Of a DNA stretch of 64,000 nt, positions 1-38,336 are shown piece by piece (position 1 is the stretch's first letter; each line of letters begins with the position of its first letter). Position numbers and translations under genes: made by a program. The notes under the pieces were generated by a model. That model made no database searches. It saw nothing but the letters and a program-made list of their open reading frames with translations, and was not told where the DNA came from. The stretch spans positions 180,053-244,052 of IMG/VR virus record IMGVR_UViG_3300025009_000050; one strand, written 5' to 3'.

Positions 1-3000
1 TGAAGGTTTCTCTATCTCCACGAATCATTGCATTGACCATTTCGGATGAAGAACTTATTCTCTTATCAAGTAGCTTATTCCTCTCTGCTTCTTGTCCTGC
101 AGAATCTATTCCAGCCCATTCATCAATTGTTTTTGCTAGATGATCATCAAGTGCAGATTTCGAGAAGTGTTTAGACGAGATAGAAGACTGTGTTACCAAT
201 TCACCGAGGGCTGTTACAGCTTGTGCTTTCTTCAAGTCAAACGACTGAGGATTTATTCTCATAGCAATCTCTGCCATCTTACGCATTGAAGTAGCTACGT
301 TCGAAGAGTAACCAATATATGAGCGGCCAAGTCTTGCTTCTAATTCGGCTCTTGCGACGCTTCCTACGGTTTGTAGCTCTGCCTTTGGTAGATCTATATT
401 TTCACCCGTATAAGCCTTCACCCAATCTCCGTATGATGCACTGCTACTCTTTCTATTGTCTGCTTCATATAGCTTAGATACTAATTCATCATAGAACTGT
501 CTTCTAGGTTCTATCTCTCTTATATGCGCTGCTATTTCACCTATTGCACCTGTGCCAGACCGTAGTTGAGATTCAATCTGCCATCTGGTTTTGCCTTTGA
601 AGTGTGCAAGCAGAGTGGACATAAAATCACCATCGTTGTCTGCTGCATAAGCTACGGCATCACCAACAGTTACTTGAATTGCATGAGGAGCTAGCCTATC
701 TAATGCCTCGTTAACTCTGAGCCAGGTAGGTTCTATAGACCTTAAGCCTTCTGTAGGATAACGACCTACTATACCAGGCAGACCTTTAACTCCATACTTC
801 TCCTGAAGTTCTCTAGTGTCTCCGAGTGCTAATTCTTCTAATAGCTCAGGAACACCTTTCTTCATACCCTTAGTCATTTCTCTTAATCTACCAAGGGATA
901 TTTCAGCAGTAGCTGCTGCTTTCTTTTGTCCAGGAGAGAATGTTTGAACTAAGAATTGTCCGCTATGTTGGAGTCTAGCAGATTCTATACTGTTATAAAC
1001 AAGACCTTTAGAATCGCTGACACCTCTGATGTTTACGTTGGTGAAATGATCCATTGCCTTTTGTAGGCTTGTGCTTGCTTCTTTCCCTGTTAGGTCAAGC
1101 GTAGCTATGTCTTGGAGCGTTCTAATCACTCTACCACTTGCTGCTAATAATTCATTAGCCTGTGGCATTTGAGCAACCCCTAGTTTCCTAGGCTGTCCTA
1201 TAGGTAGAAAGACTTTATTGATTATATTATCACCAGCAGTTACATAGAACGGTAACTCAAATACCGCTCCACCACGGGACAATATTTTCTCTGCCTTCTT
1301 TGGAGTAAGAGCTCCAGGTTCTCCAGAATGTACTTGGTTATTAGCTATCTTCTCTATGTCGTCATACCACGTACCGGTATAGTCGATATCACTCTTGACA
1401 TCTCCAGAACGTAGGAATCTTTTAAATGATGATAATGATACTCTGCCTTCTCCAGTTTCTCCTATAGGAGTCTGAGAATGTATTACTGTGTCTCTACTGT
1501 CTATCATTCCAGTTAGACTATTAATTGACCTTTCATACTTTCTTAACTGTGACTTTACTTCCTTCTTCCCAGCTTCTATGCGTCCATTTTCGCTAAGCTT
1601 GTCTGCAACTGCGCCATCTAATAGATCTACTCCAGCTTGTTCTCTAACCATCTTCTCGTATTCTTTAGCTGTTGCAGTTAACCCATTAAGTCGAAACATG
1701 CCTATTTCCTTGGGTCCTATCTTGTATATACCACCCTCACTACCTACTGCTTTGAACCATGGTTCAATAGGTTGTGCTCCTACATTCTCATAACCAGTCA
1801 TTATATTACCAACACCAGCAACATTAATTAATAACTTGTCCGTTAAGTTGCTTCCTATAATGTCACTTACTTTATCAAGCACTTGCGTCTTGAATAGCTT
1901 GTGATCTATTACTTGGTTCTTAGGATTATTGATCATCACAAGCATTTTATTCTTGCTTCCTGGTACGTCTTCAAACTTGAACCCGCTATTGCCGAAGAAG
2001 TTATTGAGAACTTTGATTACATCATCTTCTACTTTGTTTCTTACTAGATTCTTTGTAGTAATCTGATTCTGTACTTCATTAACCATAGCCCTTACTTGGC
2101 TACTTATGATGTCTCCATGTCCGCCGTGCTTGAGTGCTTGCGAGCCCATTACAAGATGAAGCTTATCGGCCTCTGCTCCGAACAAACTGTTCCATCTATC
2201 GTTCTCAACCAGAGTCAAAGTCATCTTATCACCGCTAGAGGTTATAAGTTTAAGACCATTTGCTGCTGGTAGTGTTCTTTCTACTGAAACTTTATATTTG
2301 TTTTCTCCAAGTTTCGTTATAGCATTTACTACACCAGGCTGTTTCTTATTATACCTTGCATCTCCCTGAAGTACGCCGAAAGTATTACCTTCGCCATCTA
2401 CTATCTTAGACTCTACCAATTGACCAATGGTGAATGGCTTTTCAGAGGGAGCGATAGTATAAGGGTCGCCCTTCTCTATCGAAGCTAGTATCTCCTTATT
2501 AATGTCACTAACTACATACTCGTTAACCATCTTCATCTTGAGAAGATCATTAGCTATATCGCCACGCATAAATGCTCTGGCGTCATACGTCGATTCTACT
2601 AATCCGGTTAAAGGAGCTCCAGTCCTCTCAGCCTCAGCAATCATCTTCTGTACTTGGTTATCATCCATGTAAGCTGTCTTAACAGTAACCCATGGTGCTA
2701 AGTTATTACCTGTGACTCCATATCTAGCTTTCCCTGCTTCAGTCATGAGTAGGGGGTTAGCTAGTTCACTATACTTCGTTCTAAGTGCTTCTGCTGATTT
2801 AGGGTGGAATGGATGGATATTCTCTGCCTGTGTCATCCTCATTGTTGCTGCAGATGAATGGTATCCAAATGGAATGAACTGACGTATGTCATTGACACTA
2901 CGACTGATTCTTCCATTCTTACCAGTAAACTGAGCTTCCTTGAGTGTGTGAGGATTTAATACGTCATTTATAACATCGATAGGAGTACCAAGTTTTACAC

Positions 3001-6000
3001 TTAATCTCTCTGCAATGGTTCTATTCAGGTTTACAGAGTCAGTTAAGTTCAAACCTGAGATGTCCTTCCCAGCTAGGAATTCTTTTATTCCTTCAAAGTA
3101 GATTACTTCACTACGCTGTCTTATACTAGCATGACTTAGGTTGCGTATCTTCCTAGTATCCATTACTTCATCGGAGTCAAGGAAATTGGCACCAGATAAG
3201 TCTTTAAGTACTTTGTTCTGAGCCCAGTTGACAAGTGCCTGTGCTTGTGCATAGTCTCCTTTCAACATTGCTTCTTTAACTCGTTTAGATATACCAACCT
3301 GAGATTGTAGAATCTTATCGAAGCTTGTTTCAACACCAATGTTCTTACCATCAAGTGTGAAGTCCATCTGGTTAATTCTCATAACCCTACCAACAGTAAG
3401 AATCCTTCTTTCATCCACCAATGGGATGTTAACCTTAACTACATCGCTATTATTCATTATCTGTTCTACTGTCTGCTTACCTACTGTTGCTGCTTTCTTC
3501 TCATCATATAGAGCAAAGATAAAACCCTTATTGTCAGGTGATGACAATATAGTCCCATCTATATTTGCATCTGTAAGATACCTTGATAGTAGCTTCTTTA
3601 TTGGTTCTTCTGCTTTCCTATTAAGCCCGAATAAAGGCCCTAGTCTTTTTAGTGGAGAAAGCTGTTCATGAATAATAGCATTATGCGCTTCTAACATCTT
3701 AGCAAACTCTTGGTTTGCCGCTAGGTTAGGAACAAAAGCTTTATCTATCTTCTGCCATGCACTACTACCACGTCTTTGTCCTTCATCTAGCGCATGATTA
3801 GCTACCAACCGCATTTGATCAGGGGTAAGCTTTTCCCATATGCCTCCATTATTGGCATCAACATGGGCAACCTTATATGACAAGAACTCATTAGCTAAGT
3901 TCTTAGCTTGTATGTCGTCTATCTTCATACCAGAAACAATATCATTAGCTATCCTAGTCCTATCAAAAAGCTTTGCTGCTATTTGCTTAAGTACAAAGTT
4001 ACTTTCTCTCGGACCTTGCTTCTGGATCTCTGATAGTCTTAGAAAGTTAGTAACTTCAGTACGATCTAATATATGCTTACCACCTAACTTATTTATTAGC
4101 ACTGGTAGTTCGATTTTGTCGATGGGTCTTTTGGTGATTTGCCTTAGCTGTGACACTATACCTTTATAACTACCAAGATTAAGAACTATATTATCTGATA
4201 GTTGTAACATTCTATTGTTAGTTGTAGTCTTAATAACTTTCTTAGCTGGACTAATCCCACCAGTAGCTTTACGTAAGTCAGGTATTTGGACCCTACCTTC
4301 CATTATGTCTTGTAGGGCAGTAAGGGCAAAGTCCTTCTGTACTCCTTTAAGACTTTGGAATGTTCCGCTACTAATGACAGCATTAATCATTCCTCTCTCA
4401 GCTCTTAGCCTATCTTGCATATAGTAGAAGTTTCTAGCTTGTTGCTCAGAATTGAATAGATCTTTAAATTGTCCCTTAGTTAAATCATCCATAGAAGCTC
4501 TATTGACTCCAGCTTTATCAATTGCATCAAGAGCTCTCATGTATCTCTCCGCTCTTACATGGCCTCCATCGGTATCAAAGATTCTATAATATGCACGTAG
4601 AGCTCTGTCCTTCATTCTCTCTGTCCTAGTTTCTTCACCACTGACACCAGTAATATGTTCAGCATTATATGGTACTAAATGAGAGAATATACTACGTATA
4701 CTATCGAACCCAGTACCACTAATATTCTCAGGTCTAACAAAGGTATGGTATAATCCTTCATCTACATTACGTAGGGTTAATGCCCATCCACCATGTTCAA
4801 AACCTTCAAGAGCGCCCTTCTCTATCTGCTTAAAGCTATGAATTCTGTACTCGGTATTCTTATATAGGTTCCCACTAGATATAGGCTTATCGGGGTTGTC
4901 TGAGTAAGCATCTATGAATTTGCCTGTATCATCAAGTTTATATATCCCATCGTACTTATTCTTTTCATAAGGACTTAATCCGGAAATTGAGAATAGACTA
5001 CTATCAGACTTTATTGTCTTGTTGTCTATAGCAAGTACTCCACCACTTATAGCATTCCAGTCTAATGATATGCTAGCCCCAGCTGCTATTCTTCTAGCAC
5101 TAGCTATCTTACTATTAATATTACCTCCAATGGAGTTGAGTAACATAGGTACTGCTTCAGCATCTCCACCAGCAAAGTGTTCAATTCTATTATTGAAGGC
5201 ATTAGACAATACCTCTAATGTAGTTAGACCTTGTTTCCCTCTTATCCCACCACTTAATGTCTTGTAGTGTTCCCTCATTTTCTTGTCACCAATTAGCGGT
5301 GCTATCTGTCCGATAGGGTCATGATATGCAAGGTCAATAAGTCTATTAACATCCAACGCTCTATGAGTACTATTAATGATATGTAGGTTCTTCATTAGGG
5401 TTTCAATGCTACTACTAATAGGACTCTGTGGTCCAAGAGCAGTCCTAGTCTGATTAAAGTATTCCATCATGGCAGGGATATCGTGTTCTAAGAAGTTATA
5501 CCCCATGAGGTTACCGCCATTCTTAGCTATGTTCTCTACATGATGATTTATAGCTTTAATCATGCCATCAAGATAGCTACCTGAGTTTCCATTGCCATAT
5601 AAATTTTTTAAGCCATTTCTCATCTGTGAAGTGTATGCTTTCAAATTAGTAAATGTAGATCTGTCTGGTAACTCAGATGGTGACTTAAGCTTATCTTTAT
5701 TGACAAGTCTTACATCTCCTATGCCTGGGATTGTCTCTGTCTTAAATACCTCAGAATCTTGATACCTCATTAACCACCACAGTGTACGTCTATGATCATC
5801 TGTTAATCCAGCCATTCCTGTGCTCTCTACTTGTTTGATTAAATTTTTTAGTTCTACCTTCTGCTTTTCATCTACGAAGCCAGCTAATGTCATAGTATTC
5901 ATTTTATCTAGCATTGGAGAGCCACTCTTGAGGCCATTGAACTGCCAACTAGACAAACCTACCTCAGTCATAGCAAATAGATTCATGCTCTGATTCTTTG

Positions 6001-6418
6001 CAAGTGGACTGACACCGAGGTTTTCAATATCTAAGCTTAAGTGAGTCATGCCTACATTTTTAACCATGTTCTCCCATGCGGTTATTGTTCTTTGCGCTCT
6101 AGTAGCTCCCCTGGTATTTATGTAATTAAACACACTAGTGCTTGGGTTACTAAGTACCCCATTTATTTCAGCGTTTAGTGCCCTACTAACTTTAGATCTC
6201 TCTACTACGCCACCAATGTTTCTAGGTGCACCAATGAAGTCTGGGATATTCTTAGAACGTATTATCTGTTCTTTAGTCGGTTCTGAATTAGGGTCGTAGT
6301 AATTCCTACCTGAACCACCAAAGTTCATAAGAACTTTTGGAGTACCTATACTATTAATAATACCTTTCTGTTCCAATACACTAGGTATACTAAAGAGTTC
6401 GCTATCATTAAACTTCAT
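1..6418 (-). CDS. Giant single-chain (beta+beta'-like) RNA polymerase with N-terminal DEDDh exonuclease; probable virion RNAP; 3' end outside window (>2139 aa)
   Basis: Manual translation from ATG 6418 (SD aaggtggg). All motifs are in one frame. Exonuclease: SLDIENLG (D130/E132), GYNFLEHD (D313), HFAGGD (H414/D419). Beta-like: FIPFGYHSSAATMRMTQAENIHP, GLKLITSSGDK (K1390/K1398), GGIYKIGPKEIGMF. Beta'-like: KGLVYNSIESARLQHSGQF, GRYP (R1886), AADNDGDF (626-640). Confidence 0.88.
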   Translation of the reverse strand, partial: MKFNDSELFSIPSVLEQKGIINSIGTPKVLMNFGGSGRNYYDPNSEPTKEQIIRSKNIPDFIGAPRNIGGVVERSKVSRALNAEINGVLSNPSTSVFNYINTRGATRAQRTITAWENMVKNVGMTHLSLDIENLGVSPLAKNQSMNLFAMTEVGLSSWQFNGLKSGSPMLDKMNTMTLAGFVDEKQKVELKNLIKQVESTGMAGLTDDHRRTLWWLMRYQDSEVFKTETIPGIGDVRLVNKDKLKSPSELPDRSTFTNLKAYTSQMRNGLKNLYGNGNSGSYLDGMIKAINHHVENIAKNGGNLMGYNFLEHDIPAMMEYFNQTRTALGPQSPISSSIETLMKNLHIINSTHRALDVNRLIDLAYHDPIGQIAPLIGDKKMREHYKTLSGGIRGKQGLTTLEVLSNAFNNRIEHFAGGDAEAVPMLLNSIGGNINSKIASARRIAAGASISLDWNAISGGVLAIDNKTIKSDSSLFSISGLSPYEKNKYDGIYKLDDTGKFIDAYSDNPDKPISSGNLYKNTEYRIHSFKQIEKGALEGFEHGGWALTLRNVDEGLYHTFVRPENISGTGFDSIRSIFSHLVPYNAEHITGVSGEETRTERMKDRALRAYYRIFDTDGGHVRAERYMRALDAIDKAGVNRASMDDLTKGQFKDLFNSEQQARNFYYMQDRLRAERGMINAVISSGTFQSLKGVQKDFALTALQDIMEGRVQIPDLRKATGGISPAKKVIKTTTNNRMLQLSDNIVLNLGSYKGIVSQLRQITKRPIDKIELPVLINKLGGKHILDRTEVTNFLRLSEIQKQGPRESNFVLKQIAAKLFDRTRIANDIVSGMKIDDIQAKNLANEFLSYKVAHVDANNGGIWEKLTPDQMRLVANHALDEGQRRGSSAWQKIDKAFVPNLAANQEFAKMLEAHNAIIHEQLSPLKRLGPLFGLNRKAEEPIKKLLSRYLTDANIDGTILSSPDNKGFIFALYDEKKAATVGKQTVEQIMNNSDVVKVNIPLVDERRILTVGRVMRINQMDFTLDGKNIGVETSFDKILQSQVGISKRVKEAMLKGDYAQAQALVNWAQNKVLKDLSGANFLDSDEVMDTRKIRNLSHASIRQRSEVIYFEGIKEFLAGKDISGLNLTDSVNLNRTIAERLSVKLGTPIDVINDVLNPHTLKEAQFTGKNGRISRSVNDIRQFIPFGYHSSAATMRMTQAENIHPFHPKSAEALRTKYSELANPLLMTEAGKARYGVTGNNLAPWVTVKTAYMDDNQVQKMIAEAERTGAPLTGLVESTYDARAFMRGDIANDLLKMKMVNEYVVSDINKEILASIEKGDPYTIAPSEKPFTIGQLVESKIVDGEGNTFGVLQGDARYNKKQPGVVNAITKLGENKYKVSVERTLPAANGLKLITSSGDKMTLTLVENDRWNSLFGAEADKLHLVMGSQALKHGGHGDIISSQVRAMVNEVQNQITTKNLVRNKVEDDVIKVLNNFFGNSGFKFEDVPGSKNKMLVMINNPKNQVIDHKLFKTQVLDKVSDIIGSNLTDKLLINVAGVGNIMTGYENVGAQPIEPWFKAVGSEGGIYKIGPKEIGMFRLNGLTATAKEYEKMVREQAGVDLLDGAVADKLSENGRIEAGKKEVKSQLRKYERSINSLTGMIDSRDTVIHSQTPIGETGEGRVSLSSFKRFLRSGDVKSDIDYTGTWYDDIEKIANNQVHSGEPGALTPKKAEKILSRGGAVFELPFYVTAGDNIINKVFLPIGQPRKLGVAQMPQANELLAASGRVIRTLQDIATLDLTGKEASTSLQKAMDHFTNVNIRGVSDSKGLVYNSIESARLQHSGQFLVQTFSPGQKKAAATAEISLGRLREMTKGMKKGVPELLEELALGDTRELQEKYGVKGLPGIVGRYPTEGLRSIEPTWLRVNEALDRLAPHAIQVTVGDAVAYAADNDGDFMSTLLAHFKGKTRWQIESQLRSGTGAIGEIAAHIREIEPRRQFYDELVSKLYEADNRKSSSASYGDWVKAYTGENIDLPKAELQTVGSVARAELEARLGRSYIGYSSNVATSMRKMAEIAMRINPQSFDLKKAQAVTALGELVTQSSISSKHFSKSALDDHLAKTIDEWAGIDSAGQEAERNKLLDKRISSSSEMVNAMIRGDRETF

Positions 6419-6430
6419 TGGTGTCCCACC

Positions 6431-9400
6431 TTAAACATTGATTATATTTCCAGGATCTCTATTCATAACATTGATTATCTCATTGGTTCTATCCTTGTCT
6501 ATTGATACATTAACATTCATTGAATGGGCTTCCGCAGCTGGACCATGAGATATTTGCACATCTATATCAGACAGTCCCGCTCCACGTAGTACTTGACTTA
6601 GCCTAGTTTGTATACTTCCTATGTAACTACTAGGCTTGAAGGGATCTACATCAGGAGCAGCTTCAGCATATGCCTCATCATCGGGCCAGTATCCGAATTC
6701 AGACATATCTAGTGCTTCGTTCTTTATTACCTTGAGTTTAATGTCCTCCAAACTTACGTTAGCTTTCCAGCCTTCCCAGTTAGCAGTTGGGAGATAATGA
6801 CCACGGAAGTAATCAGTGATACCGACCTTCTCATTTTGTTCCATTCCCCATCTTGCCTGGTATAGTCTACGTTGGTTCTTAGGAACTAGACTGAGAATTT
6901 CCTTCCTCTCACTTTGGTCTGCGCTCATGAAGTACTGATAAAATTCTCTATCCTTCTTAGGTAAGGCACGATATATGTTTACCATATCTCCAAGTGGATC
7001 AACGCCATATAATGTTGACTTCGCTTGTAGATTGTAGTATAGAGCTTGGATTGCATCAGGACCTAGTTGAGTGAGTCTTCTATCCTCGTCTATAGCAGTT
7101 AGCTCTCTATTGATATCTTTAAGCTTAGACTTGTTCAGGTCTGTATCAAGTTGTCCATCAACATCTTGTAACTTAAGCCATCTCTTAAGTGACTTAAGGG
7201 TGTTTCTCCTAGCCTTATTAATTCTTCCGCGCTTAGTCTCATCAGCAATTATATCCTCTACATCTACGCCTTCTGTAGCTATAGCTTGCTTTCTAGCTTT
7301 CTCGTAGAGTCCCTTATATTTAACGTACTTGAGCATATCGAAGTATTCGTTGATCTCACGTTCTTTACGACGACGCTTGGGTATCCATACTTCACCTGAT
7401 GAGTCTGTAGTCTCCCCAAGTACACGAGCTGTTGATAAGCCACCAGCAGTTACAGCACCGGTAAATGTGCCAAGCTTTCTACCGAGTACATTAGAGCCGA
7501 ATAGCCTACCTAGTACTGCACCATATAAAGCAGCAATTGGTGGTGACTTGGCAGCGAATGCCTCTAGTGTTGGCTTCATAATTCCGCTCCAGGGATCGTA
7601 CCATGGTTGCCATGCTTTACCGTGTACTTCCGTACGCTTATACATTTCAAGCGGAGATCTCACTTGTAAGAACTTTGTATGGAAAGCTGTATCAAGGTGA
7701 GCAAACCATTCCCACCACTTACCTACTGTTATCTCCTCAGGATAGAATCTAGCGTTAACTCCAACAGCGCTGAAATCAGTCTCCTTCTCAGTAACCTGAT
7801 CTCCAACTGTTCTGAGTAATTTAGCTTGTAGTGGACCACCTTCTGGAGTATATACTACGGCATGCATGGTGCTCAGTACGTCCTTCCGGACTCTATTAAG
7901 CGGGTCCTTGTCTATACCTATCTGTACTTTAGCTCCAGGGTATATTATTGCTTCTATCTCAGCTCTTGCTTCTGCTGAAGCTTCATCAGCTACTGGTACA
8001 TGTATGCCAGCAAGTCTAATTGGATGGTCTGGATGTTCAGCAGTCATGAATGTATTGGCATCTATAACCTTAGTTACGTTAACTTCTTCATTAATTATGT
8101 CAGCAGTTCTGAATTTATATGGATATAAGTTATATTTCTTCTTCTGCTGAGATACTTGTTTCTTAATGGTAGTCACTTGTTTTCTTTCTAATGGATTAAG
8201 TGACATCCTAGATACTATATCTTTATACAGCTTATGTTGTTCTGAGTATGGAGCCACGTCTGCAAGTATCTTGAATCTATCGAATGCGCCGTACTCACCG
8301 AACTCATCTGGGTGTAGATTATTTAATCTTTCATATCCAGAGCCTGGTAGTCTAGCCTCACCATTTTGAATCTTACCATATGGGTCTCCATGTCTAAAGT
8401 CCATAATATATTCTGGACCTGGCAACCAATCAGGCATCTGGTTCCCATATGGGTTGTATTGATTGCGTCTATGTTTACTATTAGGAGCAAACCTACGGAA
8501 TATCTCAGATACCGCTCCACCCATGCCACCAAGGTTTTGATCCCAGAATCCACGTCCAAAGCTGTTCATATATGATGCAGAAGCTAAGGTATTCCTGCTT
8601 CGTGGGTTATTCTCTCCACCAAACATCTGTGTTAATGTGAATCCGTAGATACCAGCCATTTCAGTTAGGCTGTAATACGTTTCTCCAGCCCTATATGCTA
8701 AGCTATTCGGGCTCATTACTTCATCTAGATCTGATATATTATCTATACCACGCATGAGATCGTTCTTACTGAATCTCATACTTCTTATTGCTCCACGACT
8801 AATAATACCTTGGTTTATGGACGTAAGTTGTTGACCACTAGCTGTTGACCCACTACCAGGAGTTCCTATAATGGGTACTCCACCGATGTTAACATTGCCG
8901 CCTGGGCTTATTGAGTAACCACCCATTGTGGTTGCTATGCCTGGATATATATTAGATAGTGCTATTCCACCGGATGCTGTTGAGTAAGCATAACCTTGTT
9001 CCTCAGCTGCCTGAGACTTAATTGATTCATTAATATCCGTAAGATACTGTCTATGAGCCTTAGATAAGTCTCCACGTTGCATATCAGGAGCAATTCCAGC
9101 CATGCTTAATGTCTTTGATGCAAGTGGACCAAAGAGTGGTAGTTCTTCTAATATGGATGCTCCACCAGTACTTGGATAAGGTCTGTCTTCCTTATGTTTG
9201 TAAGCATAGTGGTGTGGGCTAGCAATTATAGCATTTATAGGACCAATTGGGTTCTCAAGTGTTGGGTACCACTGATTCCCATAATACTCAGCTCTACTAC
9301 CATACATGACATCACTCATCATGTAGTCCGTCATTTTTCTTCTATACCAGTTGGGCATAAAGTAATCTACTTTACCGCCAGACCATGGTGTATTAGAACC

Positions 9401-12400
9401 AGTCCCCCAGTACCTTCCCTTTCTAGCCGGGTCATTTCCATATGAGTAGTACTCAGTTAGTTCCTGAGAGCTACGAGTATCGCCGATCAATCCAAATGTA
9501 GCAAAGTTAATTGCCTTGGTAGGCAACCATTCTGCAAGTTGGTCTGAGCCAGAAAACATGTCTTTCCAGCGCTTCATCATACTAGTTACGCCAGTTGCAT
9601 CTTTAAACTTGGCCATGTCTATTCTAGCGCCTACGTAGGCGCTAGATAGCTCTTCACTGGGCTTAAAGCCTGTTATACTAGCTAAGTAATCTGAATACCC
9701 AAGGTATCCAACAGTAGCCATTGGTAACAAGAATCTTCTACCAATAAGATTTAGATACGCATCCTGAGCAGAACCCAGTGACTTATTACTTAATCCAAGT
9801 CCAGCCTTACCTATGGCTTCATTCAGACGGTTAAACATGTAGTAACTTATTACAGATGCAGTAGATACTTTATCAAGGTTATCTCTACCAGCTCTAAAGC
9901 CAAATCCAAAGTCAAAACCAAGTTGACCTATAGTACTCTCAGAGAATGCCTTGATGACTCCGCCTATTCCTTCCCCACTCTTGATGGCTTCGTTAACCAT
10001 TTTGATCGGGTTGACGGACTTATTAATAACTAGGCTTCTAGCATTACCAAAGTGTTCAGGAGGAGGGAACCCAGGGCCTGCCCCCCACCATGGAGTATGC
10101 CTCTTTACTGTAGCATTGAGGCTTTCAGAGAACCACGTATCTTCCCCAGCAAGTGACCCTAAGAATCTATTTGCTGCGTCTGCTTCGTCCTCTGCATTAA
10201 TAGGTCTAAATATACCTCTGAATAGTTCTGCATTTTCACCACGCATACGATTAAGCAGCAGTAACTCTTCTGCTCTTTCTGCGTCTTTACCAGTTAGTGT
10301 AGATCTTACTAAACTGGATACTGTAGACTGACCCTCTGTATCAAACGTCTTTTGTATTTGGTACAGTAAGTCCATATGCATAGCTCTTCTAGCGTCTTCT
10401 AGTTGGGTTACGAGTTTAGTACTACCCTCGTTCTCTATCATTGAGAATATGCCAGGTAGTGCCGGTAACTCATCAGTAAGAACACGTGGTGAGTTAGCAA
10501 ACTTCTTCGGATCTCTATATAACTTTACATATTTGTTTAATAGATCTTGTACCGGGCTTCCACTAGCTGCTGTAGTCCTATGCTCTACCATCTTTCCAAT
10601 AGTAAGCATAGTCTCTTCTTCGGTTCTTGTTACAAAGTCAGCAGGTTCTAAACCGAATCTACTAGCCATAGTGGTACCATCAGGACCTCTAAGAGCAGCT
10701 AACCTCTCTATTGCATTGTTACTTAAGGCAGATGACTTTTGACTTAATATATTGTAAGCAGATCTATATGAATCTACTAGCTTGTCAGTGTCATTAACAT
10801 GGAGCATAGAACGTTCAAGAGTTTCTTCTAGACTCGCTCCTGATTCTCTTGCTTCATTCCATAACGCTACTCTCTTGCCAGTATAGTCATATTGATTTCT
10901 AGCCCAGGATGGGTTCCAGAACTTTGTGAATACACTAGTTATTTTACTAACATCACTCTGAGAATCTTGCATCCCGTAGTCAAATAGTTTTCTTATCGGT
11001 CCACTACGTTCTCTAAGTATCCTGGTCTCTTCTCGTTCAAGTCCAGCCATAGCTGATAATGTACGTGGGAATAAGCCAAACCTAGCAGAAGCTCTATATA
11101 CATTATCCTTAACAAGATTTACTTCAGGACTAAGGTCGAACACTTTATCATTAACAGCTAAGTAGTCACGCCTTATAGGTGATGTATGTCCAGTAAGAAC
11201 TGGCTGCGCTTGTCCTGTACCACGTCTAAGTATTTCGCTAAAAGGTGCACTTCTTATTCCCTGCCAACTAATCCAGTGAGCCAATCTTAATGGGTTAATA
11301 TTAACGAATGGTATATGGAAATTATTAGCTAGGAACCCTAGCGTGCTGTGGAATGAATCAGATACATGGCGCAGATCTATTATGTCACCAGTATCTTGAT
11401 GTACAAATATATTTTTATCAACTCTGAGTTTAGCTAGTTCTGCATCTTTACTAATTAGAGACTCTATCTTCTGGTTCCATTTCATAGTCCTTTGGACTAC
11501 TCTAGTCCTGTCTGTTCCCTTGATCCTCTTTGAAAATGGTATTACGGTATTATTAAAGAAATCTCTCTTAACTGCTTCGCCAACAGTTAACTGTTGGTAT
11601 CCAGCACCTTCCATTACCCTGGTAAACCAGGTATCCTGCACACGCATAGATTCCTTGAACGTGCTACGTAAGCGCTTTGCAACATTTGATAATGTTCTAG
11701 TAAGGATATCTTGTGCTTCATTATCGAATGAAGGTATAGAACCATATTGTTTAGCTAGTAAGCTCTGATTTCTTATTGCTTGAGCTATTACATCTGTGGT
11801 ATGGTCAGCTTCTGTATCACGCAAGCCTGACTTTCTAACTAATTCCCTAATGGCATCTGGACTGGCACCACGAAAGAATGCATCGTTCTTTTGCTCTAAG
11901 TGTGGTTTAATGGCATCAAACATGTCATCCGTTAGATGACCATGCCTAGGATTTAGCTGCTTCATCACCCTACTATAAATAAGATTACCAGTAGACTTCT
12001 CTAGAGCTTCTTGTGGGGTATACATCAGCTCCATCCTAGTTCTTACAAATTCAGATGGAGCTCTTCCTACGCTGTTCTTAGGAGTAAGGTGGACATCTCT
12101 CATTCTACTTCTGAAATTCTTAGATATATCAGCGATTGTATCTTCACTAAATATAGAGAACAGACTCTTATCAGCTACTGCCTCGTCAATAGACTTACCA
12201 AATGCGCTTGTGGTTTCAAAGAGTCTTCTACTCTTAGAAAGAGCTGGTGCTATGTACTTTGCTAATAGACTAGTGCCGCCAGCTCTATGAAAACCATATG
12301 CGGCACCACTAATAGCAGTAAAACCCAGGGCTGACCTTACAAAGCTGCCCTGGGTTTCGTTAGGGGAGCTGTTGAGGTACTTTTGGTATTGGTTAGTATA

Positions 12401-12406
12401 ATCCAT
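6431..12406 (-). CDS. Tape-measure-like/ejection virion protein (1991 aa) with a degenerate SNase (thermonuclease) domain
   Basis: Very long ORF directly after tube and chaperone genes; Gly-rich hydrophobic segments; VTKVIDANTF...IRLAGIHVP resembles the SNase VIDGDT...RLxGIDAPE motif. Confidence 0.65.
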   Translation of the reverse strand: MDYTNQYQKYLNSSPNETQGSFVRSALGFTAISGAAYGFHRAGGTSLLAKYIAPALSKSRRLFETTSAFGKSIDEAVADKSLFSIFSEDTIADISKNFRSRMRDVHLTPKNSVGRAPSEFVRTRMELMYTPQEALEKSTGNLIYSRVMKQLNPRHGHLTDDMFDAIKPHLEQKNDAFFRGASPDAIRELVRKSGLRDTEADHTTDVIAQAIRNQSLLAKQYGSIPSFDNEAQDILTRTLSNVAKRLRSTFKESMRVQDTWFTRVMEGAGYQQLTVGEAVKRDFFNNTVIPFSKRIKGTDRTRVVQRTMKWNQKIESLISKDAELAKLRVDKNIFVHQDTGDIIDLRHVSDSFHSTLGFLANNFHIPFVNINPLRLAHWISWQGIRSAPFSEILRRGTGQAQPVLTGHTSPIRRDYLAVNDKVFDLSPEVNLVKDNVYRASARFGLFPRTLSAMAGLEREETRILRERSGPIRKLFDYGMQDSQSDVSKITSVFTKFWNPSWARNQYDYTGKRVALWNEARESGASLEETLERSMLHVNDTDKLVDSYRSAYNILSQKSSALSNNAIERLAALRGPDGTTMASRFGLEPADFVTRTEEETMLTIGKMVEHRTTAASGSPVQDLLNKYVKLYRDPKKFANSPRVLTDELPALPGIFSMIENEGSTKLVTQLEDARRAMHMDLLYQIQKTFDTEGQSTVSSLVRSTLTGKDAERAEELLLLNRMRGENAELFRGIFRPINAEDEADAANRFLGSLAGEDTWFSESLNATVKRHTPWWGAGPGFPPPEHFGNARSLVINKSVNPIKMVNEAIKSGEGIGGVIKAFSESTIGQLGFDFGFGFRAGRDNLDKVSTASVISYYMFNRLNEAIGKAGLGLSNKSLGSAQDAYLNLIGRRFLLPMATVGYLGYSDYLASITGFKPSEELSSAYVGARIDMAKFKDATGVTSMMKRWKDMFSGSDQLAEWLPTKAINFATFGLIGDTRSSQELTEYYSYGNDPARKGRYWGTGSNTPWSGGKVDYFMPNWYRRKMTDYMMSDVMYGSRAEYYGNQWYPTLENPIGPINAIIASPHHYAYKHKEDRPYPSTGGASILEELPLFGPLASKTLSMAGIAPDMQRGDLSKAHRQYLTDINESIKSQAAEEQGYAYSTASGGIALSNIYPGIATTMGGYSISPGGNVNIGGVPIIGTPGSGSTASGQQLTSINQGIISRGAIRSMRFSKNDLMRGIDNISDLDEVMSPNSLAYRAGETYYSLTEMAGIYGFTLTQMFGGENNPRSRNTLASASYMNSFGRGFWDQNLGGMGGAVSEIFRRFAPNSKHRRNQYNPYGNQMPDWLPGPEYIMDFRHGDPYGKIQNGEARLPGSGYERLNNLHPDEFGEYGAFDRFKILADVAPYSEQHKLYKDIVSRMSLNPLERKQVTTIKKQVSQQKKKYNLYPYKFRTADIINEEVNVTKVIDANTFMTAEHPDHPIRLAGIHVPVADEASAEARAEIEAIIYPGAKVQIGIDKDPLNRVRKDVLSTMHAVVYTPEGGPLQAKLLRTVGDQVTEKETDFSAVGVNARFYPEEITVGKWWEWFAHLDTAFHTKFLQVRSPLEMYKRTEVHGKAWQPWYDPWSGIMKPTLEAFAAKSPPIAALYGAVLGRLFGSNVLGRKLGTFTGAVTAGGLSTARVLGETTDSSGEVWIPKRRRKEREINEYFDMLKYVKYKGLYEKARKQAIATEGVDVEDIIADETKRGRINKARRNTLKSLKRWLKLQDVDGQLDTDLNKSKLKDINRELTAIDEDRRLTQLGPDAIQALYYNLQAKSTLYGVDPLGDMVNIYRALPKKDREFYQYFMSADQSERKEILSLVPKNQRRLYQARWGMEQNEKVGITDYFRGHYLPTANWEGWKANVSLEDIKLKVIKNEALDMSEFGYWPDDEAYAEAAPDVDPFKPSSYIGSIQTRLSQVLRGAGLSDIDVQISHGPAAEAHSMNVNVSIDKDRTNEIINVMNRDPGNIINV

Positions 12407-15383: not shown

Positions 15384-17024
15384 TTAGAATGTGGCCCTTA
15401 AAGATACATTAACTCTGATCTTGCGATTCTCTAATGCAGGAACCAATTCAAGGTCAATATATGATTCGCCAAGAATTTTCTGCTCTAATGTAGCAGTGAT
15501 GCTGAATCTATGGGCAGTTATAGCACCAGCAGTTTTCATCTTATTGAGTCCAGATTTGATTGCTGTGTTAAGTGCATTACGTTGCGGAAGTTCATTAGGC
15601 TCACCAATGAATGGCTCAGCTTCTTCACGCACTAATTTAACTGCAGCAAAAACAATTCTCATCGTACTTAAACGAGAATAATCGGATTTCTGTCCATTAG
15701 CTAATGGAGCTGATGCTGTACAACCATCTGTAACAGCTACGCCTTCAGTACGATTTTTAAATGTCACGTAGTTATATTCAGTCAGATCATTGAGTTGGGC
15801 TGGACTTAGCTTGTAGCGGAGGGAACGAACATTAGATAGAATTTTATTTGTGGGAGCAGATTCTGCTGGCAAACTAGATATTAAACCAGCATAAGCAGCG
15901 GCACCAGGAGCATAATATCTACCGATAACTGGGTGAACAAATTGCAATTCCGGCATTGCTACTACATTTACATAATGACCAACTGAAATTTGTATACCAG
16001 TCAATACGTTCTTCTCATAAGCAGGGAATGTGAAGGTCCCAGCCTCCTCATCATGAGTAACCTTTATCTTGTAATATTTATTTGCATTGGTTCTAGTCCT
16101 AAGCGCTGTTACCTTAGTCTTTACGTTAGTCTGACTTACCGTAGCAATTGGCTTACAAGCGATAACACCGAATGTTTCGATGCCTCTCTCAGATACATTA
16201 GCACAATGGTTAGCTAGTTGTTCTGCATAACCGATTTCTTCACCAGCTTTGGCATGACCTACCGGATACACATCATCTGCATACAAACCAAGTACAGAAA
16301 TAGAATCTGTTTCATAATCCTCTATTGCCTGGTATGCATGATACATTTCATGATAAGTATCGTCGGCAGTCATATTAAGACCATCGCTACCGCCTGTTAA
16401 CTTAGTAGCTGGTTTAACAGCTAATACATCTGCAGCTACATCAGCTAAGATACCATCTTCTCCTAACTCAGCAATAACAACGTTGTTATTAGGATTGTCA
16501 TTGATAAGTTTAATGAGTTCTTCTATAGTCATGGTAGGTGTGATATTGAAGGTTAGAGTTGAACTACCCTTCTCTGCTGGTTTAGTAATAGTTAATGTGG
16601 TTGCTTTAGATTCTACTACAATAACTGTATACGCAGTGTTATTGTATAGGGAGCCTGCATAAACGGCTGTTAGTTTAATTGCTTTTCCGGGTGTTACCGC
16701 AGTAATGTCTTCAATGTTGGCAGACGCAAACTCGCCACCTACTCTGACTAAACGGATATCGCGGCAACCTGCATTGTAACTCTCCAACATTCCAAGCAAG
16801 AGACTTGTTCCATTGGCTATGCCATTAGCAACATTGTATGGTTTTCCAAAAACTAATTCAGCATCTTCTGGACGATATACAGATACAGGTTCATGCTTTG
16901 GACCATCGGTAGCAGTACCAATCAGTGTTACACTATTAGTTGTTACTGTCTCACGAGGTATAGTCAAACCTCCATCTTTATATTCGATAGTAAAACCAGG
17001 AAGATATTGATATAAGTCTGTCAT
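15384..17024 (-). CDS. Contractile tail sheath protein
   Basis: YLPGFTIEY, IGTATDGP, LVRV, LSTMRIV, EPFIGEPN and C-terminal LELVP..IRVNV sheath motifs. Confidence 0.85.
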   Translation of the reverse strand: MTDLYQYLPGFTIEYKDGGLTIPRETVTTNSVTLIGTATDGPKHEPVSVYRPEDAELVFGKPYNVANGIANGTSLLLGMLESYNAGCRDIRLVRVGGEFASANIEDITAVTPGKAIKLTAVYAGSLYNNTAYTVIVVESKATTLTITKPAEKGSSTLTFNITPTMTIEELIKLINDNPNNNVVIAELGEDGILADVAADVLAVKPATKLTGGSDGLNMTADDTYHEMYHAYQAIEDYETDSISVLGLYADDVYPVGHAKAGEEIGYAEQLANHCANVSERGIETFGVIACKPIATVSQTNVKTKVTALRTRTNANKYYKIKVTHDEEAGTFTFPAYEKNVLTGIQISVGHYVNVVAMPELQFVHPVIGRYYAPGAAAYAGLISSLPAESAPTNKILSNVRSLRYKLSPAQLNDLTEYNYVTFKNRTEGVAVTDGCTASAPLANGQKSDYSRLSTMRIVFAAVKLVREEAEPFIGEPNELPQRNALNTAIKSGLNKMKTAGAITAHRFSITATLEQKILGESYIDLELVPALENRKIRVNVSLRATF

Positions 17025-17641: not shown

Positions 17642-19069
17642 TTATACTCTTACTGTTACAGTTATTGACTTTATCTCGCCAATAGGTACAGCAGTTATAG
17701 TTATAATCTTCTCGTCAGTTGATTCAGTAATGTTTATTGAGAATTCTCTTACATAATTATTAGTAACTAGATTCGACATAACAGTCGTAACCTTTTGCAC
17801 AATATATGAGGAGTTAAATCCAGTGTCTATACTACCTATAAAATTTGATAGGACTTCTTGCACATCATTCGATATCTTCTGGGATATCCGAACATATGTT
17901 AGTGATTTATATATACTTTTGTCTTTATCTAAAGTTAAGGCCGAATTTACAACTGGACCATTACGAATAGAATTTCTTACTGGGTTTAATCCTACATTAG
18001 TAAGTGCATTAATTTCCTTCTGGCTAAATGAGTACAATAATTCACCAGAGCAAAGACGTTTGTTCATAACGCTATTACTACTAGGAAGCAATGTGCACAA
18101 TCCACCAATTGCTGGAGCTAATGTAGTCTTGAACGTACTTGTGCCATCATATATGTTTGCTTCTCCAACAATTACAGATACGAAACGGCCAGAATCACCA
18201 TCATTTTCAGTTAAATCATTCTTGTGTTCTGACGTAATTAAACTATTGACATACTCTTCGACAGTTTCAATGTCTGTCTTTGGTCTTGCAGAAACAATTC
18301 CAATAGTACTCATGCCTGTCTCATTCCGTTTATAGCAGAATGAAGCTAAGTCCTTAATGTAATTTTCATTACCAGCGTAATAAGCACCGCTAAGTACAAT
18401 AACTTCAGCTGGAAAATTGAAAATCATGTCCTCGTATCCTTCTAAAAGTGACTGTGCAAGTGTTTCAGAATCATAGTCACGTCCATTACTAAGCATTGTG
18501 AAAGGTTGACTAGCTAATGAACTAGTATGGATAGAAGCTGATGACAAGTCATCATTTAATATCGCACAAACATCTACAAGCCCAATCTTAGAGTCGTCAT
18601 TTATGGCCTCACATAGATGGCCTAATGTAGGGTAAATAGTCAAATCATAAGTTCTATTAGTGTTATTAATATTCTTTATAATTAGCTTATCTGCTAGTCC
18701 TGATGCTACCGTTACACTAAAGCTTATTGCATCATTATACTTAACTCCAGCATTCTTACTATATAAAGTAAAGGCCACATCTGTTGGACTATCTATTATA
18801 TCTGGCTGTGTTCTATATGGTACTTGGTACCAAGAGGCACATCCATTTACTCTCATTAGATATATATCGACAGCACCAACTTCGCTAGCAACATACCAGG
18901 CTTCAGATAAATCACAACTGCCGAAAGTACTACTAGCAACTTCATAAGAATTGATATATGTTGGTTCCCATACGGGACCATCACTTGCGTATCCAATTAT
19001 GAGGACAGTATTGCTGGGGACAATATCATAGCTAATTTTAGGAGATGAAAATACGATATGGATACTCAA
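17642..19069 (-). CDS. Second tail sheath-like protein
   Basis: IIGYASDGP, YLMRVNG, LNPVR, YVRI, FIG, PIGEIKSITVTV; divergent sheath paralogue. Confidence 0.75.
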   Translation of the reverse strand: MSIHIVFSSPKISYDIVPSNTVLIIGYASDGPVWEPTYINSYEVASSTFGSCDLSEAWYVASEVGAVDIYLMRVNGCASWYQVPYRTQPDIIDSPTDVAFTLYSKNAGVKYNDAISFSVTVASGLADKLIIKNINNTNRTYDLTIYPTLGHLCEAINDDSKIGLVDVCAILNDDLSSASIHTSSLASQPFTMLSNGRDYDSETLAQSLLEGYEDMIFNFPAEVIVLSGAYYAGNENYIKDLASFCYKRNETGMSTIGIVSARPKTDIETVEEYVNSLITSEHKNDLTENDGDSGRFVSVIVGEANIYDGTSTFKTTLAPAIGGLCTLLPSSNSVMNKRLCSGELLYSFSQKEINALTNVGLNPVRNSIRNGPVVNSALTLDKDKSIYKSLTYVRISQKISNDVQEVLSNFIGSIDTGFNSSYIVQKVTTVMSNLVTNNYVREFSINITESTDEKIITITAVPIGEIKSITVTVRV

Positions 19070-21156: not shown

Positions 21157-22254
21157 TTACAGGATAGCATCGGTAATTTCATTGGCAGTACCAGAAGCAG
21201 GTAAATCAACTTGGAAGTTAGCTTGCGGCAGCGGATAAGTCTTCTTGAATGGAATGTTCTTAGCTACGGCAATACCGTACCCGCCATTTAATATACCAAT
21301 TCCATAGCGCTCTCTTACTTTCATAGCCTGGATATCTCTAGTAGGATCGTCGAATTGTTCGGTAGACATGTCGTCTTTAACTAACATTACACCTACGTTA
21401 TTGCGGTCCAAGATATAGAAACTGAACTTCTTATTAGCTTGATCAAACGGAACCCATGGAGAGAAGGACAGATTAAGTCCACCAACAGGAATACCAGTAT
21501 TGATGCCTACTTGAGGCGGTGCTTGAGCAATTGAAGTTGCAGGAGCACTTTGACCAAATGCAGAAACCTTCAAGCTATCGAGGATCTCATTCTTATAGAA
21601 GAGTGTCCAGCATAATGGGTGCATGATAATATCGGTAGGATTAAAACCAGCAGCGATGATGGAAGTACACATATCTACGAGATCTTCTGCAGTCAGAGTA
21701 CCATTCTTATTACCGTAGAAGTCACGACCATTACCTTTAGCTTTGGGATCTGCAGAGTCGCCATCGAATACAATATGACCGTGCTTATTAAACTCACGGA
21801 AAATATTTTCTTCCTTGAGGCGAGCCATAGCAGCACCAGCAGCACGTAAATGCATACCAATTACATCCCACTGTGAGTCAGAAATCATTTCATCAGTGAC
21901 CTTAATTTTAAGACCATATTTCTTTACTTTGACTTCAGTGGTCATCTTATCAATGTGGTAATTCAAGGTTTGCTCAGGATATTCCTGTCCCTCAGCGACT
22001 TCGAATGCACGAATAGCGCCAAAGATAGGGAATTCCATGGAACGGCCTTCGGTAAGTTGAATACGCTGTAAAAACTTAGAAGCTAAGTATGCTGGTTCGG
22101 CAGCTTCTAACATCATAGTACTTACTACCTTGGGGAAGAGAATGGATGCATCAGGAGTTGATAAAGCTTCAGCTACCGCAATGCGGTCTTTATTGGGAAC
22201 TTTACCTCCGGGAGCAACCTCCATAATCTTCATATATTTTTCCATTAAATCCAT
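21157..22254 (-). CDS. Major capsid protein (HK97 fold)
   Basis: AFEVAEGQEYPE, KYGLKIKVTDEMISDSQWD, IIMHP, KVRERYGIGI; strong SD. Confidence 0.9.
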   Translation of the reverse strand: MDLMEKYMKIMEVAPGGKVPNKDRIAVAEALSTPDASILFPKVVSTMMLEAAEPAYLASKFLQRIQLTEGRSMEFPIFGAIRAFEVAEGQEYPEQTLNYHIDKMTTEVKVKKYGLKIKVTDEMISDSQWDVIGMHLRAAGAAMARLKEENIFREFNKHGHIVFDGDSADPKAKGNGRDFYGNKNGTLTAEDLVDMCTSIIAAGFNPTDIIMHPLCWTLFYKNEILDSLKVSAFGQSAPATSIAQAPPQVGINTGIPVGGLNLSFSPWVPFDQANKKFSFYILDRNNVGVMLVKDDMSTEQFDDPTRDIQAMKVRERYGIGILNGGYGIAVAKNIPFKKTYPLPQANFQVDLPASGTANEITDAIL

Positions 22255-35831: not shown

Positions 35832-36023
35832 AGATTAGCAACTATTAATGGTAGTACTGTAACTGTAGCCTTAAATCAACCTACTCTTGTGTATTACAAA
35901 GGTAGAGACATATGGGTAACAGTAGAACAGATACAACTACTACATGATAATGGTGAGCATGTACTAGCCGATGTACTTGATGTGTATAGACAGAACATTA
36001 AGTACTTCTGGAATGTACAATAG
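35829..36023 (+). CDS. Hypothetical early protein (64 aa)
   Basis: SD aaggag then ATG 35829. Confidence 0.6.
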   Translation: MRLATINGSTVTVALNQPTLVYYKGRDIWVTVEQIQLLHDNGEHVLADVLDVYRQNIKYFWNVQ

Positions 36024-37796: not shown

Positions 37797-38336
37797 ATGA
37801 AATATATTATCCCTCGCGCACTGCACAAGCTTGGGTTCTGGATTACCGAGAATGAACTGCTTGACATGGGCAGGCAGATCATTGACGAGTATTCAGAACC
37901 AATTATTGCTGACTTATGTGCCGAATTCGGCATCGAGTCAGATGGAATAGAAGACAGAATGTTTGTGAGTGCGTCTGCTCACTGCATTACAACTGGCCAA
38001 CTATATTATCAATATCATATGGATGGCTATTATCATAAGTATACGTTAGGTTCAGCTAGTATTACATTATTCCCATTGGTATCCCAGTTCAAATACATTA
38101 ATGGTAAAAGATATAGAATACCATTATGCGAAATGATACCAAGAAGTGTATATAAAATGTTTCTTATAAAAAATCTTATTCATGAGCTACGTCATTGGGC
38201 ACAATTAGTGACTGGTAAGATATTCTATCATGATATGTGGTTCAACGGAGAATCACTTATCGAGTATGGTAATCGGTGGAGTGAACACGATGCTCAGTCC
38301 TATTCTATTCACTATATAACTAATAAGTTAAAGTGA
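37797..38336 (+). CDS. Putative zincin-like metallopeptidase
   Basis: IHELRHWAQ (HExxH) and downstream WSEHDA. Confidence 0.55.
   Translation: MKYIIPRALHKLGFWITENELLDMGRQIIDEYSEPIIADLCAEFGIESDGIEDRMFVSASAHCITTGQLYYQYHMDGYYHKYTLGSASITLFPLVSQFKYINGKRYRIPLCEMIPRSVYKMFLIKNLIHELRHWAQLVTGKIFYHDMWFNGESLIEYGNRWSEHDAQSYSIHYITNKLK

Follow-up and report, generated by a model that had tools for sequence, protein, structure and literature searches.

The giant protein P0001 is encoded at the left edge of a 64,000-nucleotide stretch of viral DNA (positions 180,053 to 244,052 of IMG/VR record IMGVR_UViG_3300025009_000050; hereafter the window, whose coordinates are used unless another locus is named). Very probably, this protein carries an active-looking 3'-5' exonuclease of the DEDDh (DnaQ-like) type at the head of a giant two-barrel RNA polymerase encoded in a phage tail module. 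The reading frame of the exonuclease segment (5160-6040) is on the minus strand, the plus strand having no long open reading frame (ORF) in this interval. The minus strand is open without a stop from position 6430 to position 1. The P0001 gene starts with an ATG at 6418-6416, its 5' part covers 1-6418 on the minus strand, and it continues past the left window edge; on contigs of about 244 kb it is called at a full length of 2452 amino acids. A script check showed the translation of the window to be identical to residues 1-2139 of P0001. A Shine-Dalgarno sequence (AAGGTGG; 6426-6432, minus strand) is found 7 nucleotides upstream of the ATG, where it overlaps the TAA stop codon of an upstream ORF of 1991 amino acids.

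The exonuclease domain, as delimited with an AlphaFold model, VIA-align and Foldseek, occupies residues about 116-445 (5084-6073; this and all other features of the gene are on the minus strand). Its Exo I motif, D130-I-E132 (LDIEN; 6023-6031), is invariant and lies on predicted strand beta1 (residues 125-135), the codons for D130 and E132 mapping by script to 6029-6031 and 6023-6025. The Exo II motif, G306-Y-N308-x4-D313 (GYNFLEHD; 5480-5503, with N308 at 5495-5497 and D313 at 5480-5482), has G306, N308 and D313 invariant and is placed in the model at the start of a helix (residues 309-328) that follows a strand at residues 304-306. The Exo III motif, H414-x4-D419 (HFAGGD; 5162-5179, with H414 at 5177-5179 and D419 at 5162-5164), is invariant in all full-length sequences and sits at the start of a helix spanning residues 416-447. 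The presence of His rather than Tyr in the Exo III motif defines the 'h' subgroup, making this motif one of the DEDDh type. Other residues of the domain are equally constant. E152 (5963-5965), in a TE[IV]G motif on predicted strand beta2, is invariant; we take this strand to resemble the xxE[IL][GA] strand of DnaQ-like enzymes, as a lead only. A conserved helix, G-L-T-D-D-x-R-R-T-L-x-x-L-x-x-Y-x-D...F, is seen in the alignments at residues 204-225 (5744-5809; helix 207-219 in the model), with R211, L216, Y219 and F225 invariant, as is P315.

With residues 1-480 as the query, phmmer was run exhaustively against 1.84 billion representative proteins and yielded only nine: the query itself, six proteins of 2264-2446 amino acids, P0005, and P0009, which is 303 amino acids long. 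P0005 was rejected as a relative, being a spurious translated tandem-repeat ORF. P0009 was considered as a free-standing exonuclease or a natural split and was also rejected. Its locus in a metagenomic relative (L005:3778-11027) is divided into three ORFs of 303, 331 and 1777 amino acids; an in-frame TAA is present at 4687-4689 of L005, past which the homology goes on, and ten consecutive N stand at about 4763-4772. This locus is an assembly or sequence defect or a pseudogene. A word-indexed protein search, which saturates at 8000 candidates, gave back the query alone, both for the single sequence (region 1-480) and for a 7-sequence profile, and a search for related loci with single proteins gave back the contigs of those proteins alone. 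A tblastn search of phage records identified homologues in three cultured Bacillus jumbo phages, vB_BauM_KLEB27-3, vB_BceM_WH1 and Edson. The KLEB27-3 protein (gp034, 2434 amino acids; L001:11716-19020) is annotated as 'structural protein', the WH1 protein (gp095, 2515 amino acids; L009:8893-16440) as 'virion structural protein' and the Edson protein as 'hypothetical protein'; neither an exonuclease nor a polymerase domain is annotated in the public records of these homologues. The best viral structural match to the exonuclease model, the BFVD entry A0A7R7G2L5_1 (E-value 1.8e-9), is a 1257-amino acid fragment and probably represents the N-terminal portion of a giant phage homologue.

Residues D130, E132, N308, D313, H414 and D419 are invariant across the query, the six metagenomic representatives and the KLEB27-3 and WH1 proteins, at overall identities of 20-46%, and no exception occurs among the ten full-length relatives examined in all; the catalytic residues were still invariant once the WH1 protein, which is only 20% identical, was added to the alignment. 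Of the 341 columns that cover residues 105-445 in the full-length alignment of 8 sequences, 17 are invariant. An earlier sequence-only reading of the window had named D130, E132, D313, H414 and D419 as a DEDDh set before any relative was at hand. Its residue numbers proved exact by script, and all five residues fall among the 17 invariant columns (hypergeometric p = 1.7e-7). The acidic residues are conserved in homologues, as that reading demanded, and so is the histidine. The 'IDL' element that it had listed along with them (D361) did not hold up: D361 is not conserved, and the invariant acidic residue of that region is D356 (ALD; 5351-5353), which directly follows predicted strand 354-356 and is constant in the 9-sequence alignment.

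All full-length relatives collected by way of the exonuclease (2264-2515 amino acids) retain the fusion and share the same architecture; conservation of the fusion among homologues, which the sequence-only reading had proposed as a check, is borne out in this set. The exonuclease and the polymerase core have diverged to similar extents, with mean pairwise identities of 26.8% and 25.5%, respectively (Pearson correlation 0.93), and both separate the family into the same three clades. There was no sign of domain swapping between exonuclease and core. Such parallel divergence speaks for a functional unit that is old and stable, and against an effector that can be swapped.

The exonuclease model was obtained with AlphaFold2 from an 8-sequence alignment in which the GenBank Bacillus phage protein was not among the rows. 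The predicted local distance difference test score (pLDDT) is about 80-94 over residues 110-440, and the predicted template modelling score (pTM) is 0.71. The model adopts the RNase H-like DEDD fold that the sequence-only reading had staked its assignment on, with VIA-align Z-scores of 10-12.8 to exonuclease I, epsilon, TREX1 homologues and RNase T. The highest score was with Escherichia coli exonuclease I (12.8), followed by the epsilon subunit of DNA polymerase III (12.1; 169 of 176 residues aligned at 2.7 A, over model residues 123-432), TREX1 homologues (11.4-11.6), RNase T (10.4-10.9) and the proofreading domains of family B and T7 DNA polymerases (9-10). All 50 of the 50 best matches have the DnaQ-like (DEDD) fold; the lowest-ranked among them include the nuclease-inactive RNase H-like domain of ESRP1 and Maelstrom domains. 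In Foldseek searches of PDB and Swiss-Prot, the top matches were RNase T, exonuclease I, DnaQ and a TREX1 homologue, with probabilities of 0.95-0.98.

The P0001 domain shares with known DEDDh enzymes (epsilon/DnaQ, exonuclease I, RNase T and TREX1) the fold, with Z-scores of 10.4-12.8 and nearly the whole epsilon catalytic domain aligned, as well as the three motifs and their order: Exo I (DxE), Exo II (NxxxxD) and Exo III (HxxxxD), each on the equivalent predicted secondary-structure element. It differs from these enzymes in having no significant sequence match to them and in carrying two large family-specific insertions, at about residues 220-300 and about residues 365-410; moreover, this type of exonuclease was found only as the head of a chain of about 2,300-2,500 amino acids encoded in phage tail modules. 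Sequence comparisons gave faint signals. The best family members matched the Pfam families DNA_pol_B_exo1 (E-value 0.004, two members) and RNase_T (E-value 0.09). When the family profile was compared with PDB sequences, Exo II aligned to its counterpart in herpesvirus and delta DNA polymerases, the E-value of about 0.6 being non-significant, and in an hhalign comparison with E. coli epsilon only Exo III aligned, H414 and D419 pairing with H162 and D167 at an E-value of 0.38, also non-significant. Those language-model neighbours that bear a family name belong to DEDD families. A megablast of the query against phages gave no match. Taken from sequence, the signals for an exonuclease are thus weak but concordant. 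The domain is a very divergent DnaQ-like branch whose membership rests on fold and motifs.

A beta'-type double-psi beta-barrel active-site domain was recognized with Foldseek and VIA-align at residues about 1814-1982 (473-979). It contains the metal-binding motif D1927-N-D1929-G-D1931 (626-640), with all three aspartates invariant, and, N-terminal to this, the motif G-R1886-Y-P1888-T (752-766), with R1886 and P1888 invariant. The fourth position of the DxDxD motif is G, S or K in the P0001 family. In a model of residues 1300-2300, the pLDDT around the catalytic motif is 68-82. Foldseek searches with this core model returned RNA polymerase largest subunits only (E-values 1e-5 to 1e-3, probability 1.00), from AR9, phiKZ, E. 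coli, cyanobacteria, plastids and Pol II, the value of 1e-5 being reached with AR9 and with E. coli beta'. VIA-align superimposed model residues 515-683, corresponding to residues 1814-1982 of P0001, on Rpb1/beta' subunits with Z-scores of about 11 and 110-120 residues at 2.5-3.0 A. Chains of PolD, gp66 and QDE-1 were absent among the 50 best structural matches of the core. At the sequence level, the full-length family profile aligned NRxPT...DxDGD to the beta' subunit of the AR9 non-virion RNA polymerase (E-value 0.41, non-significant), tblastn gave a match to RpoBC of Erwinia phage PhiEaH1 (E-value 0.2), and one family member weakly matched Pfam RNA_pol_Rpb1_2 (E-value 0.004). No second DxDxD motif with an R-x-P-T context is present within the window.

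A candidate for the second, beta-subunit-like barrel is found in a beta-rich segment around G-D-K at residues 1396-1398 (2225-2233). Basic residues are conserved in this segment at positions 1389 and 1398, the one in the G-D-K motif being kept in all members, and the model has a pLDDT of about 50 there; no beta-subunit match was returned by Foldseek for the low-confidence core model. A beta-type barrel at this position is therefore putative. Where a bridge helix and trigger loop might be sought, long helices follow the catalytic barrel in the same low-confidence model, and some alignments extend to model residues of about 700-800 with a high root-mean-square deviation. According to the sequence-only reading, the RNA polymerase core lies in frame about 1000 residues downstream of the exonuclease. 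The fusion itself is supported, and the distance fits the putative start of the core at G-D-K, about 1,000 residues downstream, while the catalytic DNDGD motif lies about 1,500 residues after Exo III.

The remainder of P0001 is less readily classified. The N-terminal leader (residues 1-105; 6104-6418) is predicted to be disordered (pLDDT below 50 over residues 1-104) and has few conserved columns. The segment that follows the exonuclease, residues 443-480, is also predicted to be disordered in the AlphaFold2 model, and no conserved motif was found in this linker in the family alignment. The middle region (residues 446-1380; 2279-5083) is conserved within the family and has no recognizable domain, with zero matches in Pfam, PHROG and PDB; a language-model search with residues 460-1300 gave weak leads only, to 'large polyvalent protein' domains (score 0.6). 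Conservation within the family peaks beyond the window, over roughly the last 150 residues (2300-2452), whose mean pairwise identity is 38%, with values of up to 72%. This conserved C-terminus is preceded by a segment that is rich in Gly and weakly hydrophobic (residues 2322-2340). The C-terminal region may be an assembly or membrane-insertion module.

The left half of the window is a myovirus structural module on the minus strand, from a jumbo myovirus of roughly 244 kb. It includes genes for terminase (30135-31757), portal (25154-27241), prohead protease (23821-25149), major capsid protein (21157-22254) and two tail-sheath paralogues (17642-19069 and 15384-17024), which both match tail-sheath PHROGs and are separated by a 192-amino acid ORF. 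Small genes follow the sheath paralogues, and then three giant genes: the 1991-amino acid ORF (6431-12406, minus strand), which has no recognizable domain, P0001 in the middle and, after a gene of 94 amino acids, a protein of 1972 amino acids. After the giants come an M15 peptidase (a cell-wall hydrolase) and baseplate-like genes. In four genomes, the P0001 gene lies between sheath/tube genes and hydrolase/baseplate genes; the same gene order recurs in a metagenomic relative and, with tail chaperones ahead of the three giants and an amidase or LT-like protein behind them, in the Bacillus phages. The 1972-amino acid giant lies beyond the left window edge (L003:17656-23571), and its residues 45-150 match Pfam SNase (E-value 8e-6; 26.7 bits, the cut-off being 21). 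P0001 and this adjacent giant of the tail module each start with a nuclease-type domain, and the SNase-like domain could alternatively be an OB-fold of a baseplate hub. The idea that the three giants have a common C-terminal targeting module was rejected, as comparison of the three with one another revealed no detectable similarity.

Elsewhere in the window, the GC skew and the coding strand both switch at about position 36000, with minus-strand structural genes to the left and plus-strand, mostly short ORFs to the right. G+C content falls to about 35% after 46 kb of window. The region to the right of about 36000 looks like an early or accessory region. No tRNA genes were found in the whole window. 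The motif TAACTARTARGTG occurs five times, against a chance expectation of about 0.7, at positions 38317, 47039, 47455, 48784 and 48986, always on the plus strand and always in the small-ORF region; four of the five sites are intergenic and the one at 38317 lies in the last codons of an ORF. Four of the five belong to a repeat family of about 63 nucleotides. The motif is a candidate phage-specific promoter or regulatory element.

A close parallel is gp66 of the crAss-like phage phi14:2, a 2,180-amino acid single-chain virion polymerase with a DxDxD barrel that is ejected with the DNA and transcribes early genes (preprint). About 1,600 of its residues have no homologues, its gene is flanked by two genes for large virion proteins, and no nuclease has been described in it. 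P0001 resembles gp66 in being a giant single chain with a DxDxD barrel, mostly without recognizable homologues, and in having two large neighbour genes. The two proteins have no detectable sequence similarity, however, and gp66 did not appear among the structural matches listed for P0001. The N-terminal part of gp66 holds a cleft-blocking domain where P0001 has the exonuclease, the catalytic motif has I or V at position four in gp66 instead of G, S or K, and the P0001 phage, unlike phi14:2, is a myovirus. A polymerase is also part of a giant tail-module protein in Thermus phage P23-45, whose gp96 is a two-barrel polymerase fused to the tape measure and found full-length in virions (PMC10770324). 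Both gp96 and P0001 have the polymerase N-terminal to a hydrophobic or membrane segment, weakly hydrophobic in P0001 (residues 2322-2340). In gp96, however, the polymerase is at the extreme N-terminus and a metallopeptidase domain is present, with no nuclease mentioned in the paper (PMC10770324); P0001 is one of three giants and is at most a candidate for the tape measure.

Other systems share one or another element with P0001. Polyvalent proteins are delivered together with the DNA of phages or plasmids and bring many unrelated enzymatic domains into one chain; for N4-like virion polymerases, fusions to a predicted RNase (PBECR), a peptidase, a lysozyme or an ADP-ribosyltransferase are on record (PMC5512222). 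Like P0001, polyvalent proteins are very large and multidomain, are encoded among late or virion genes and can combine a virion polymerase with other enzymes; P0001 has their size, their genomic context and at least two enzymatic domains. The differences are that the N4-type polymerase is T7-like and not two-barrel, that DEDD exonucleases are absent from the domains listed (PMC5512222), and that the architecture is fixed in the P0001 family and shuffled in polyvalent proteins. No signature polyvalent-protein domain rose above noise in a language-model search of P0001. YonO of prophage SPbeta is a single-chain two-barrel polymerase, error-prone and with no detectable RNA hydrolysis (PMC5467207). 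It differs from P0001 in having no exonuclease domain and has not been reported as a virion protein. Archaeal PolD is a two-barrel, DNA-making polymerase in which the proofreading exonuclease, DP1, is a separate subunit with an Mre11-like fold. PolD thus parallels P0001 in pairing a two-barrel polymerase with a proofreading exonuclease, and it is described as homologous to RNA polymerases (PMC7281927). In nidoviruses, exonucleolytic proofreading of RNA synthesis is ascribed to the nsp14 ExoN (10.1101/2021.02.01.429129), a DEDDh exonuclease dedicated to an RNA-synthesising polymerase, nsp12. The latter is a right-hand, RNA-dependent enzyme, separate from nsp14 after polyprotein cleavage, whereas P0001 would unite the exonuclease with a two-barrel polymerase of the DNA-dependent type in the same chain, and a proofreading role for it is hypothetical. 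No description of a DEDD exonuclease on a virion polymerase or on a two-barrel polymerase was found in the literature searched.

By analogy with gp66 and gp96, P0001 would be carried in the virion, be ejected with the DNA and transcribe the first genes. Working in cis with the polymerase, its N-terminal domain would shorten single strands that have a free 3'-OH, using two-metal-ion hydrolysis, and the substrate that we favour is the 3' end of the nascent RNA upon misincorporation or backtracking by the polymerase. Such a substrate would make sense because one or few polymerase molecules enter each cell, so that an arrested complex would abort the infection, and because YonO, a minimal two-barrel polymerase, is without intrinsic RNA cleavage, which could account for the presence of an accessory exonuclease. 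Proofreading is the classical role of polymerase-fused DEDD domains; in P0001, it is what we infer from the architecture. On balance, we lean slightly towards a genuine DEDDh exonuclease with a role coupled to the polymerase, be its substrate RNA or DNA, the processing of DNA nicks or gaps being a close alternative within this idea. That the substrate is specifically an RNA 3' end is a tentative proposal. It is a rather doubtful step further to regard P0001 as the first two-barrel RNA polymerase with a built-in DEDDh exonuclease that trims nascent RNA, providing proofreading or arrest rescue as nidovirus ExoN does and replacing intrinsic or Gre/TFIIS-assisted cleavage.

Several points weigh against a polymerase-coupled exonuclease. 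Nothing significant was found for the exonuclease when the P0001 query was compared with Pfam (E-values up to 10), with PHROGs and, by phmmer, with PDB, and the Foldseek E-value of the exonuclease model is weak, about 0.02, because of the large insertions and the disordered leader. The clustering of the five catalytic residues at two metal sites is deduced from the positions of the motifs on equivalent secondary-structure elements of a predicted model. The core model (residues 1300-2300) is poor overall (pLDDT 51, pTM 0.33), and what is supported is the beta'-type barrel, not a beta-type barrel, bridge helix or trigger loop. The active sites of exonuclease and polymerase are about 1,500 residues apart in the chain. 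The relatives were collected from the exonuclease side, so that members lacking the domain would escape, and the label 'structural protein' on the Bacillus phage homologues is the depositors' annotation. A polymerase that serves few early genes and makes few transcripts has little obvious need for fidelity. Finally, polyvalent giants often join unrelated effector domains just for joint delivery (PMC5512222); this precedent and the SNase start of the next giant both fit a reading in which the exonuclease is an independent effector.

The exonuclease might instead act on the incoming DNA, widening a nick to a gap or, at the genome end, trimming a 3' overhang or flap; a polymerase without a sigma-like melting factor could then load on a single-stranded template. 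The closest structures (exonuclease I, epsilon and TREX1 homologues) are DNA exonucleases, and recombinant crAss-like gp66 was strongly active on single-stranded DNA in vitro and prefers single-stranded templates (preprint). The stable, co-diverging fusion fits any polymerase-coupled role, this one included. RNase T and other DEDDh enzymes match nearly equally well, however (Z-scores of about 11), and the fold cannot separate DNA from RNA as substrate. Polarity bears on the question in two ways: a 3'-5' exonuclease starting from a nick would open a gap upstream of a polymerase entering the duplex, while at a duplex end the same polarity would remove the inward template and serve outward-facing genes only. 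Resection of the injected genome end, one of the options put forward in the sequence-only reading, is mechanistically awkward because the exonuclease would remove the very strand read by an inward-moving polymerase. There is, moreover, no evidence of nicks in this genome. We regard template preparation as conceivable, though doubtful.

Alternatively, the exonuclease could be an independent effector, fused to the polymerase for joint delivery and degrading host or defence nucleic acids (for example the 3' ends of host RNA or DNA, guides or primers, or linear oligonucleotide signals) in the first minutes of infection. The weak language-model leads that tie the middle region to 'large polyvalent protein' domains agree with this, as does the SNase-like domain with which the adjacent 1972-amino acid giant likewise begins. 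Against it, the architecture of P0001 is identical down to 20% identity and its domains co-diverge, whereas polyvalent architectures are variable; one or few molecules per cell are also poorly suited to bulk degradation. DEDD exonucleases require a free 3' end and cannot open cyclic signalling nucleotides. Polyvalent proteins provide the precedent, N4-like polymerase fusions among them, and a DEDD exonuclease is not on the list of their domains (PMC5512222). It is hard to give this role more than a minor share of the probability, similar to that of template preparation.

P0001 is unlikely to be a polyprotein from which the prohead protease or some other protease releases the exonuclease as virions mature, leaving it to work on its own in the virion with no physical link to the polymerase. 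The window does contain a prohead protease gene (23821-25149), the residues after the exonuclease (443-480) are predicted to be disordered, and the fused gp65-gp67 of some crAss-like phages are probably cleaved into separate proteins (preprint). On the other side, P23-45 gp96 is full-size in virions (PMC10770324); weak counter-evidence comes from the location of the gene in the tail module (tube to baseplate), not the head module, and from the linker being devoid of a conserved motif. Cleavage would in any case leave the identity of the domain unchanged and would be compatible alike with RNA trimming, template preparation and an effector role. A catalytically dead module with a structural or nucleic acid-binding role, of the kind seen in Maelstrom and in certain polymerases whose exonuclease-like domain is inactive, is highly improbable, and so is a chance motif match: Maelstrom and the ESRP1 RNase H-like domain do occur among the lower structural matches, but inactive DEDD-fold domains typically lose acidic residues, and in P0001 and its relatives D130, E132, N308, D313, H414 and D419 are all invariant at 20-30% overall identity, with the p value given above.

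The architecture of P0001 appears to be new and is built from domains of known kinds. The family is a distinct lineage of giant two-barrel polymerases in jumbo myovirus tail modules, unrecognized by Pfam and PHROGs. Three cultured Bacillus phages, KLEB27-3, WH1 and Edson, carry the family, making these ideas directly testable at the bench. To our knowledge, all known cellular-type RNA polymerases correct errors and are released from arrest through RNA cleavage in the polymerase active site itself, with Gre or TFIIS assisting, and exonuclease-based proofreading of RNA synthesis is established for nidoviruses only. If an active exonuclease is indeed part of an ejected two-barrel polymerase, it would represent a second way of controlling transcript quality or rescuing arrested complexes, or else it would reveal how an injected polymerase without a sigma factor prepares its template or disarms the host in the first seconds of infection.

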